From contig JAHDYR010000024.1 in assembly GCA_019828565.1 (NCBI GenBank), forward strand, positions 342,834 through 406,833: 64,000 nt of DNA, in the 5' to 3' direction. Within the stretch, counting starts at the first letter, position 1. Every line of letters starts with the position of its first letter. Below, piece after piece: positions 1,607 to 49,507 of this stretch. Below the pieces are notes generated by a model. It made no database searches. It saw only the letters and a list, made by a program, of their open reading frames with translations, and was not told where the DNA came from. Both the position numbers and the translations under genes were made by a program. The DNA is from Carpediemonas membranifera BICM. Taxonomy: Eukaryota > Protista > Fornicata.

Positions 1607-1666
1607 CATGCTGCGTTTTCCGGTACTCTAACCGGGACTTAAAGTCCCAGAATCAAGTCCCGGAAT
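1607..1666 (+). repeat. Left TIR of giant transposon
   Basis: catgctgcgttttccggtactctaaccgggacttaaagtcccagaatcaagtcccggaat matches the reverse complement of 49449-49507 with 6 mismatches and 1 gap. It contains the palindrome gggactt-a-aagtccc. Confidence 0.92.
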
Positions 1667-2119
1667 CCTTGATTGATTTTGATCGATGTCGTCGGATCAT
1701 CCCCAAAGTGGGTGACAGTCTTCTACTAGCCTAGTTCTACCTCTGGAAACATTATTAGCGCATGTCGATGTCACAAAAAATATTTATGATCGTTTTCCGT
1801 ATCGTCAGTGCAGGATAAGGTCGCATGACTTGGCCAAAGTCGCTCTTCAGAACTCGATCGTCTGACACATACAAACGCTAAAAGTGGTTGGCAAAGATGC
1901 ATTAGACCTTGTATATGACGTGTATAGACAAAATTTCGGGTGTTGCACTGTCACCTCTGAGGGGTATCCTCTCAAAAAGTGTTGAAACTCCTACTGTAAC
2001 ATCCCCTTGCTGTCCTAGCAACGGAATAGTACTTTATTTACTTCAACTTTATCCCATTCGATAAAGAAAAGTCAAATTGTGTGAGCAATCTTCAACCTTA
2101 AAGTGCACATACAGGCATC

Positions 2120-3307
2120 GTGGAAAAGACCCAAAAACGAGAAATCCTGATTGCAATTGCAAAAGAAGTATTCTACTTTCAACGCGATTGTGCTCAAGCC
2201 ATGCCTGTTGCGGTTTCAGAGGTGTGCTGGGCTATTCTGCCAGATGATATCCGAGCTCTCTACAAGAAGAAGCAAGCGATGGCTTGTTCTCTTCGTCATG
2301 CCCTTATCCACGCTCTGGATGGACTCGCCCCCTCGTCTTACCAGATCAACACCGAGGGTAAGGTCAAGGGTGTGTTCCTCAAGGACTTCGGCGAGATCAA
2401 CCTATCAAGGCTGCAGGACAACCTGCAGGCAGCATCAGGTACCACTAGCACTGTGGTATGGCAGCCTCCGGTTTCGCGCTACATCAGCATCCCCTTCCAG
2501 ACCTATTCGAAGAAGAAGGACAAGAGGGCTCGGAAACAGTCTCAACCCGCCCCTCAGTCGGTCGTAACTGTTCGTGACAATCTGGCCAGTGAACACAGAC
2601 AGCGGGAAGCAGCGCACATCGACCAAGTCGCTTCCCAATTTTCCACATGTGTGGCGCAGGCAACGGCACTTATCCAGACAGGAATGAACCGGCGCCACGC
2701 ACTCGACAACTTCACTTATCAGCAGCTACGAAACTCATTGCGCATGTGTTGTGGGGTCTGTCACGATCCGATGAATCTGCTGCTGAAGATTGAGGACGAC
2801 AACTCCCTGCAGTGCCAACAATGCGAGAGGTACTTCCATTATAGCTGTGTCAGTGGCTACTTGGAGGAGCGAATGGCATACCCGGCATCTAACAGGGCCG
2901 ATAAGCAGAAGATATCCATCTGCGATGACTGTAAGGCAATCAATGGTAACGACGAGTGCTTTCATCGTACACCTCCAACCGAGACCACCCAAGCAGCGGA
3001 CTGTGGTAGAAGTATTAAGGATGGACCCAGCATGCTCTGCTACTTTTGTTCCAACTGGTTCTGTCCGGATCATATCGCGGACACCGTTTTTGACACTGGA
3101 ACTGACATGTTGAAGCGTCCTTCTCGTCGTGTTCCGGTGTGCGTGAATTGCTTTCCTCGCATTCAGAGAGGCCAGCGACAGTTCAACGGTGAGTATACCA
3201 ACGCTGCCCGCGCTATTACAGAGCCATTGACACTCGCGGATGACGAGGCTCGTGATGATGTCAGTATCCGCGAGGAGGTGAGTGATGAGGAGGATGACCA
3301 AGAGTGA
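2120..3307 (+). CDS. PHD-finger-containing protein (cargo)
   Basis: 395-aa ORF with C4HC3-like finger CGVC..CQQC.RYFH.SC..CDDC, a second Cys/His cluster (CYFC..WFC.DH..CVNC) and an acidic tail. Confidence 0.75.
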   Translation: MEKTQKREILIAIAKEVFYFQRDCAQAMPVAVSEVCWAILPDDIRALYKKKQAMACSLRHALIHALDGLAPSSYQINTEGKVKGVFLKDFGEINLSRLQDNLQAASGTTSTVVWQPPVSRYISIPFQTYSKKKDKRARKQSQPAPQSVVTVRDNLASEHRQREAAHIDQVASQFSTCVAQATALIQTGMNRRHALDNFTYQQLRNSLRMCCGVCHDPMNLLLKIEDDNSLQCQQCERYFHYSCVSGYLEERMAYPASNRADKQKISICDDCKAINGNDECFHRTPPTETTQAADCGRSIKDGPSMLCYFCSNWFCPDHIADTVFDTGTDMLKRPSRRVPVCVNCFPRIQRGQRQFNGEYTNAARAITEPLTLADDEARDDVSIREEVSDEEDDQE

Positions 3308-48489: not shown

Positions 48490-49448
48490 ATAGATGGATA
48501 ATCGGAGTATGTATATAAAGGGTTCTTTATGTTTACACTATCTTCACCAATCTACAGTCAATTACGTCTATTGCGAGCGAAGAACAGCTTTCAGTAAGAA
48601 ATTTGAGGCAACTGTCAGGTAATTCTTAGTAACGTCGTCGGCAATGGCGTAATAGTCATCCATTTCAGTCAAGTGACTCAGCTTAACGCGCATTTGCTTG
48701 ATTTCGGCGATAAACTCGGCCCGCTTCATTCGTTTGTCATAAAGTGCATTCCGGCCATATCACAAGTTTTCTTCATCACAAGGCACGCACGGGGGTGTAA
48801 GCGGGACCGAGGCTACCACCACAGCCTCTTCTGAGCCGATGGATACCTTTTGTTGATTTGCCAGAATTGACCAAACGACGAGGAATGCTTGATATGCCGC
48901 GTATGGATGATTTGAAGAAGAACTGAAGGTGAAAGACAAAGATCATAGAAATACACATCATGCGGCTCACTTTTGGAGACATTGGAGGTAAATTAGCTTT
49001 TAGGATCGTTTTTCGTTTGCCAGGCAAAGTTTTGAGTGTTTTCTCGAGAATACTCGATGCCGTATGCAATCTTGCTGCTATTTGATGCAGAACAAAGGTT
49101 GTTATGTGACACAGATGTTCTCACTTGCTTTCGGCCTTCTTTGTTGGCGAGCAAAAGCAAACTTCTTTGGGAGCAATTCCCAAAAATCGCATCTTTACGC
49201 ACCCAGGAAATTTTATCTCGGCATACTGGACCAGTGGGGGAGGCACGGCAGTCTATCCCGACCCTAGATGAACCATGAGACAGTTTTTCGACGAGAGTTT
49301 GTGCGATGCCACTGACTTCGCGAGTGAAGGTCTTCAGCATGTTGTACGGATGTCTAAACGATGCCTTGTGCAAGTGCAAGGCGTAATACGCTGTAGTTTA
49401 ATTGTTTGAGCGCGTTCATTTTTTCTTGCAATCGTCCTTTTTTCATGT

Positions 49449-49507
49449 ATTCCGGGACTTATTCCGGGACTTAAAGTCCCGGTTAAAGTACCAGAAAAAA
49501 CAGCATG
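49449..49507 (-). repeat. Right TIR of giant transposon
   Basis: Reverse complement reads catgctgttttttctggtactttaaccgggactttaagtcccggaataagtcccggaat. Confidence 0.92.

Follow-up and report, generated by a model that had tools for sequence, protein, structure and literature searches.

The window analysed here is a 64,000-nucleotide stretch of the genome of the protist Carpediemonas membranifera (assembly GCA_019828565.1, contig JAHDYR010000024.1, positions 342,834 to 406,833). Positions 1607-49507 of this window form a single element bounded by terminal inverted repeats (TIRs). Most likely it belongs to a giant cut-and-paste DNA transposon family that is present in many copies and was active recently; we put the probability of this reading at roughly 0.85. 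The window copy spans 48 kb in total and 22 kb after subtraction of later insertions. Because the predicted RAG1/Transib fold of its putative transposase, its CA..TG tips and its 2-bp target-site duplication (TSD) fit the RAG1/Transib/CACTA (CMCT) clade, it is apparently a lineage that is new but of a known kind: a giant, apparently active branch of that clade that is an orphan at the sequence level. What sets it apart is its size, together with a partly conserved set of genes related to chromatin.

The element interrupts a Gypsy pol gene

The left TIR (1607-1672, forward orientation) and its inverted counterpart on the right (49442-49507, reverse orientation) are ~88% identical over ~66 bp when aligned from their common tip, CATGCTG. 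Each TIR carries two GTCCCRGAAT boxes spaced 13 bp apart, at 1644-1653 and 1657-1666 in the left one. The window holds four such boxes against 0.22 expected, and all four lie within the TIRs. Directly outside the tips stands a GT dinucleotide (1605-1606 on the left, 49508-49509 on the right), and at this point a reverse-strand Gypsy pol gene is split. Its upstream half, with the protease and reverse transcriptase, is found at 49508-51855 (protease and RVT_1 in the open reading frame (ORF) 49483-51855), and its downstream half, from RNase H onward, at 983-1606 (RT_RNaseH in the ORF 983-1609). In silico deletion of the element together with one GT gives a continuous pol frame through AFAKMKDLVTEHTALALPDLDKPW, and the rejoined junction, a single open frame, reads through AFAKMKDLVTEHTALALPD.

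Intact copies of the same Gypsy element provide the empty site. Searches with the 200 bp on either side of the element lead to one and the same set of ten further loci (96-100% identity). In 10/10 cases the left-flank and right-flank matches share exactly 2 bp, and both halves of pol are joined at a single GT. Hence, the TSD is GT. The first-pass annotation had placed the boundaries and the GT duplication exactly here, and the TIRs, the flanking dinucleotides, the restored frame and the ten intact loci bear it out. It had also entertained CATG as the duplication; this 4-bp palindromic alternative is ruled out by the 2-bp overlap and by the lack of an extra CATG in the intact copies.

Near-identical copies are spread through the genome

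We compared the element with the C. membranifera genome (24.2 Mb, 69 contigs). About 21 left ends (98-100% identity) and about 19 right ends (99-100%) were found, and all ~40 carry the tips CATGCTG...CAGCATG. At least ten left and right ends face each other as pairs, with a spacing of 16-62 kb. Five of ten pairs have identical 2-bp flanks (TC, GT, AA, TG and TT), where 0.6 would be expected by chance (binomial P = 1.8e-4). Three copies, on contigs C3, C47 and C67, are colinear with segments 1607-11019, 20733-22540, 33883-35558 and 40469-49507 of the window, to which they are 99.6-99.9% identical. They define a canonical element of ~21.9 kb, in agreement with the core of about 22 kb that had been claimed after subtracting insertions. 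In all, the elements are estimated to make up ~2% of the 24 Mb.

A putative transposase with a RAG1/Transib-like fold

An 854-residue protein is encoded near the right end (45925-48489, forward strand; J8273_6817, annotated as a hypothetical protein). Its predicted fold and its relatives point to it as the transposase. In an AlphaFold (AF2) model built on the family alignment (predicted local distance difference test, pLDDT, 72; predicted template modelling score, pTM, 0.71), the chain forms a beta1-beta2-beta3-alpha-beta4 RNase-H-like sheet in which D339 ends beta-1 and D422 lies just past beta-4. When the model was compared with the PDB by Foldseek, the top 49 matches were all to RAG1, to the amphioxus RAG-like protein BbRAGL or to the Helicoverpa transposase HzTransib (best E 2e-8). 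The model is consistent with an RNase-H-fold DDE enzyme of multi-domain RAG1/Transib architecture, with a putative triad of D339, D422 and a Glu, and the earlier proposal of a DDE-type enzyme stands on this point.

Five motifs are invariant in the family alignment: W-x-D-G-W, which contains D339, G-D-H-K-A, which contains D422, P-P-x-M-H-x-S, R-T-x-G-C-N-E-Q and L-L-E-E-x-F-E-R. The third catalytic residue is most likely a Glu of the last motif (E687, E688 or E691), because residues 320-612 of the model map to RAG1 580-907, which would place RAG1 E962 near residue 687. In the same mapping, D339 falls beside RAG1 D600. Our initial pick had been E564, because its G-C-N-E-Q motif resembles G-N-E-S of RAG1, and it was downgraded because the mapping points near residue 687.

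The gene is present in six intact, 100%-identical genomic copies, in addition to several disrupted ones. Further transposase subfamilies are found in the genome at 50, 56-58, 35 and 27-31% identity, many of them with frames longer than 800 residues. A phmmer search of 1.84 billion cluster representatives returned 17 proteins only; the matches that were traced belong to C. membranifera itself, as paralogues, to the unannotated assembly GCA_002919055.1 and, in one case, to a metagenome. A word-indexed protein search, with the single sequence and with the profile, retrieved only the protein itself and one paralogue.

Sister elements share the putative transposase and the CAT-N-CTG tips

An element with CATACTG tips that is nested in the window copy (see below) encodes a transposase homologue of 27% identity (E 7e-18), split into two frames on the reverse strand (30603-31058 and 31034-32818). 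Besides a PHD-like gene at 23004-24227, it carries a SET gene recognised by Pfam (25744-26430) and a reverse-strand ORF of 336 residues (24271-25281) with a caspase-like His/Cys pattern, SGH...C-H-S, recognised by eye only. A second relative lies in assembly GCA_002919055.1 (PPCM01000946.1, L065:2171-13799). This 11,629-bp element has 74-nt TIRs, CATACTG tips and a GC duplication. It, too, sits in a Gypsy pol gene, in the RNase H region, and its removal restores the RNase H frame. It encodes a homologue of the transposase with 26-28% identity, a caspase-like protein of 330 residues and a SET-like protein.

Since both elements carry homologues of the 854-residue protein, this protein, a CAT-N-CTG tip and a 2-bp TSD are now common to three element families that have diverged from one another and are spread over two genomes. 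Across the families, the duplications read GT, TC, AA, TG, TT, AA and GC, and a sequence preference is not evident.

Transposase homologues on L070 (metagenome scaffold ENA ERZ23495434) and L067 (PPCM01001758.1) adjoin genes for GNAT acetyltransferases, a further chromatin-type enzyme that accompanies this transposase family.

Placement relative to known transposons

Hallmarks of the CMCT clade are 5'-CA..TG-3' termini and TSDs of 2-5 bp (Kojima 2025, PMC12730594). CA..TG termini are found here at the ~40 ends of the window family, and the sister families have them in the form CATACTG. A 2-bp TSD is seen at the ten empty sites, in the nested element and in the L065 element. A DDE transposase related to those of RAG1, Transib and EnSpm is likewise present, recognisable by its fold only.

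Several observations weigh against the reading proposed here. First, five of the ten end pairs have non-matching 2-bp flanks (on C67, C36, C50, C38 and C18), and two of the five have the canonical length (C67 433346-453424, AA/TA; C36 71163-95613, TG/AC). Our guess is that ectopic recombination between 20-kb near-identical copies exchanged the flanks; chimeric assemblies or imprecise integration are other possible causes. Second, the catalytic Glu was placed by aligned-range mapping only, and E564 is conserved equally well. Third, sequence searches gave no link to a transposase: none of 16 family members matched Pfam, RAG1 models and Transposase_21 included (E <= 1), and the family profile matched no PDB sequence at E <= 10. 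The earlier statement that no named family could be recognised therefore holds at the sequence level. Fourth, the family alignment does not show the C(2)C and H(3-4)H motifs of the CMCT clade in that form, and it has no conserved C-x2-C. Only H521-x2-H524 is seen, with H521 invariant and H524 replaced by F in three members; C562 is invariant.

In the strongest alternative, the element is a highly diverged member of a CMC/CMCT superfamily that already has a name (Mirage, Chapaev, CACTA/EnSpm, ESTA, Lanisha or Plavaka), hence a large family within a known superfamily and not a lineage of its own. The tips, the 2-bp duplication and the RAG1-like fold would all fit such a member, and a Transposase_21 (CACTA) cluster is among the Atlas neighbours of the transposase, both structural (template modelling score, TM, 0.52 by row, 374 aligned residues) and feature-based (0.87). 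Against it stand the mere 17 phmmer proteins, with the narrow origin of those that were traced, the lack of any Transposase_21 or RAG1 match in Pfam and the missing C(2)C motif; for ESTA in particular, the TA duplications of that group differ from the varied ones seen here. We consider membership in a named superfamily unlikely, though it deserves to be taken seriously.

Comparison with individual groups shows where the likeness lies. As in CACTA elements, there is a second conserved element protein and there are complex subterminal repeats; CACTA elements differ in their 3-bp TSD. The carriage of chromatin- or epigenetics-related genes is shared with TET/JBP-carrying fungal elements. Mirage elements have a TSD of 2 bp. 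In contrast to the known CMC/CMCT families, the host here is a metamonad. Transib and RAG1 have 5-bp duplications and CAC tips, as opposed to 2 bp and CATGCTG or CATACTG here. There is no detectable sequence similarity to Transib, RAG1 or ProtoRAG, and neither a RAG2-like kelch protein nor the C(2)C/H(3-4)H zinc motif was found. Whereas a Transib element is typically a few kb long with one ORF, the elements described here measure 11-22 kb and contain many genes. A Tc1/mariner element would have a TA duplication and a Tc1-type DDE/D transposase; here the duplication is not TA, and the fold matches RAG1/Transib.

The first-pass annotation had likened the element to fungal Starships, though with a different enzyme. 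Like Starships and other giant cargo-carrying transposons of eukaryotes (Arkhipova & Yushenova 2019, PMC6431247), it is tens of kb long and multi-genic, can hold other transposons and exists in recent near-identical copies. The analogy is apt for size and gene carriage and breaks down at the enzyme. Starships use a tyrosine recombinase, encoded by a 'captain' gene at one end; here, no recombinase domain was detected in any ORF of at least 150 residues. The genes at the two ends encode a PHD-type and a RAG1-like protein, and the element has TIRs, a DDE enzyme and a 2-bp TSD. In addition, Starship cargo is variable, whereas part of the gene load is kept across lineages here.

A second alternative is that the 854-residue protein is not the transposase. 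The element would then be non-autonomous, or it would depend on a different enzyme, either encoded by itself or unlinked. The protein does lack a sequence-level match to any transposase. Its family is, on the other hand, the only one with a nuclease or recombinase fold that is common to all four elements compared, no other canonical ORF of at least 150 residues matches an integrase, recombinase or HUH family, and the transposase subfamilies diverge together with their elements. We therefore regard another enzyme as improbable. The least probable explanation is a viral one, in which the element is an integrated virus or something virus-like (akin to Polintons/Mavericks, or a fragment of a large DNA virus). 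The size, inverted terminal repeats, many genes and OTU protease, whose nearest clusters are partly from Nucleocytoviricota, would suit it, but the canonical part showed no capsid gene, no protein-primed or other polymerase, no packaging ATPase and no rve integrase. In addition, the TSD measures 2 bp and not 5-6 bp (6 bp in Polintons/Mavericks), and there are ~20 near-identical copies with a RAG1-like transposase.

A literature search found no description of these elements, and neither "transposon" nor "transposable" occurs in the text of the genome paper (PMC8516963).

Canonical structure and nested insertions

Relative to the canonical element, the window copy contains three added blocks, one of them compound, which amount to four nested elements. 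The first block (11020-20734, forward orientation), absent from the C3, C47 and C67 copies, is a 4.9-kb long terminal repeat (LTR) element with LTRs of ~110 bp and a GTGG duplication. A Gypsy element has inserted in its left LTR (11029-15831; 98-bp LTRs, TSD GTCAG, 1335-residue pol with a chromodomain). The second (22541-33883, forward) is the 11.3-kb sister-family element with CATACTG tips described above, with 50-bp TIRs and an AA duplication. The third (35559-40468, reverse) is a second copy of the 4.9-kb LTR element in opposite orientation. This LTR element has the ends TGTGG...CCACA and no long ORF, and is probably non-autonomous. Nested insertion 1 truncates the kinase gene of the element, and nested insertion 2 splits a gene of 402 residues.

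Repeats also shape the canonical part. A 1.9-kb inverted repeat, with arms at 3096-5038 and 43234-45175, is likewise found in the C3, C47 and C67 copies. The region 4591-10570 is a tandem array of ~3.3 units of 1.81-1.86 kb, the number of which varies between copies. A module of ~385 bp occurs six times (four direct, two inverted; 98.4-100% identity) at the joints of the array and the inverted repeat, at 4653-5038, 6516-6898, 8329-8711, 10143-10525, 43234-43617 and 45269-45652.

Putative accessory genes

At the end opposite the transposase, a gene for a PHD/Cys-rich protein (2120-3307, ATG at 2201, forward strand) shows a weak Pfam PHD match; L066 and the nested CATACTG element both contain homologues of it. 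Its identity tracks that of the transposase: next to transposase copies of 100% identity it is likewise 100% identical, and the values fall to 45-46% in the subfamily with a 50% transposase and to 24-25% next to the 35% one. Among the subfamily pairs compared by coordinates, the two genes lie 6-38 kb apart. A complex prediction for transposase residues 99-730 with the PHD protein, folded without alignments, gave a score of 0.00, which speaks neither for nor against binding. We infer that the PHD protein is a candidate obligate partner of the transposase and that the SET, kinase and OTU proteins may have accessory functions.

The SET-like gene (5071-5799, reverse strand) gave no match in a direct Pfam search, and is related by BLASTP to the SET protein of the nested element (25744-26430; E 3e-8) and to L065:10823-11632 (E 8e-8). 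The protein kinase gene (20725-21702, reverse; Pfam Pkinase 5e-22) encodes 325 residues here versus 440-445 in other copies. The 402-residue gene, without a Pfam match, has its 3' half at 21867-22540 (reverse) and its 5' half at 33884-34441, and is uninterrupted in the C47 copy (L061:8245-9453). A 572-residue protein (40582-42300, forward) carries a C-terminal OTU-like cysteine protease domain with a DGNC motif; 29 of its 30 nearest named Atlas clusters carry OTU, and its structural TM to OTU proteins is 0.65. An ORF of 337 residues with an R-x4-H motif (3622-4635, forward) has an inverted duplicate at 43635-44648. Its HEPN matches are sub-threshold and serve as a lead only (HEPN_RiboL-PSP, E 0.012; HEPN_Swt1, E 0.023), and comparison gave no support for homology with the 330-residue caspase-like family of the sister elements. 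The canonical element also holds several ORFs without a match.

In the sister elements, homologues of the PHD, SET-like and kinase genes are found at 22-32% identity, a divergence about equal to that of the transposases. Because they recur in such distant relatives, they are more likely to serve the element, for example in chromatin targeting or escape from silencing, than to be captured host passengers. The multi-gene load reported by the first-pass annotation is real; of what it called cargo, these three genes look like accessory functions that the element itself encodes. In the subfamily with a 50%-identical transposase (C14:334216, C15:27811, C24:292937 and C34:107764), the kinase (C14:326045, C15:40721, C24:325073 and C34:117622) is 98-99% identical to that of the window family. 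The difference between the two values suggests that element families have recently swapped internal modules.

A possible mechanism

By analogy with RAG and Transib, the transposase would bind the paired GTCCCRGAAT boxes of each TIR and nick at the CA..TG tips, and the element would then be released, probably via hairpinned flanks. The 3' ends would be joined to the target with a 2-bp stagger and without evident sequence preference. Speculatively, if the excision break were repaired with a sister copy as template, the donor would be restored, which could explain the rise to ~20 copies. According to the genome paper (PMC8516963), Ku70/80 and DNA-PKcs are missing from metamonads; classical end joining is absent from the host.

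A more far-reaching proposal, which we offer tentatively and think less likely to be right than wrong, is that these elements are a new two-component branch of RAG1/Transib in metamonads, of superfamily rank. The transposase would act with a co-evolving PHD partner encoded at the opposite end, and the element's own SET, kinase and OTU proteins would choose or condition the chromatin of insertion or evade silencing. This would be an independent parallel of RAG1 and its PHD-containing partner RAG2, in a host without Ku and DNA-PKcs.

Implications

The elements extend the RAG1/Transib/CACTA group by a lineage that branches deeply and is an orphan by sequence, and they bear on the age and variety of the ancestors of the V(D)J recombinase. 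Here, 20-60 kb of DNA appear to be moved by a cut-and-paste enzyme of the DDE type, at the top of the size range of TIR transposons. With near-identical copies and six intact transposase genes, the family should lend itself to tests of activity. Transposon-encoded manipulation of chromatin is suggested by the recurrent PHD, SET-like and kinase genes and by the OTU-like gene of the window family. Finally, how RAG-like excision breaks would be repaired in a host without classical end joining (PMC8516963) is a testable question of interest.

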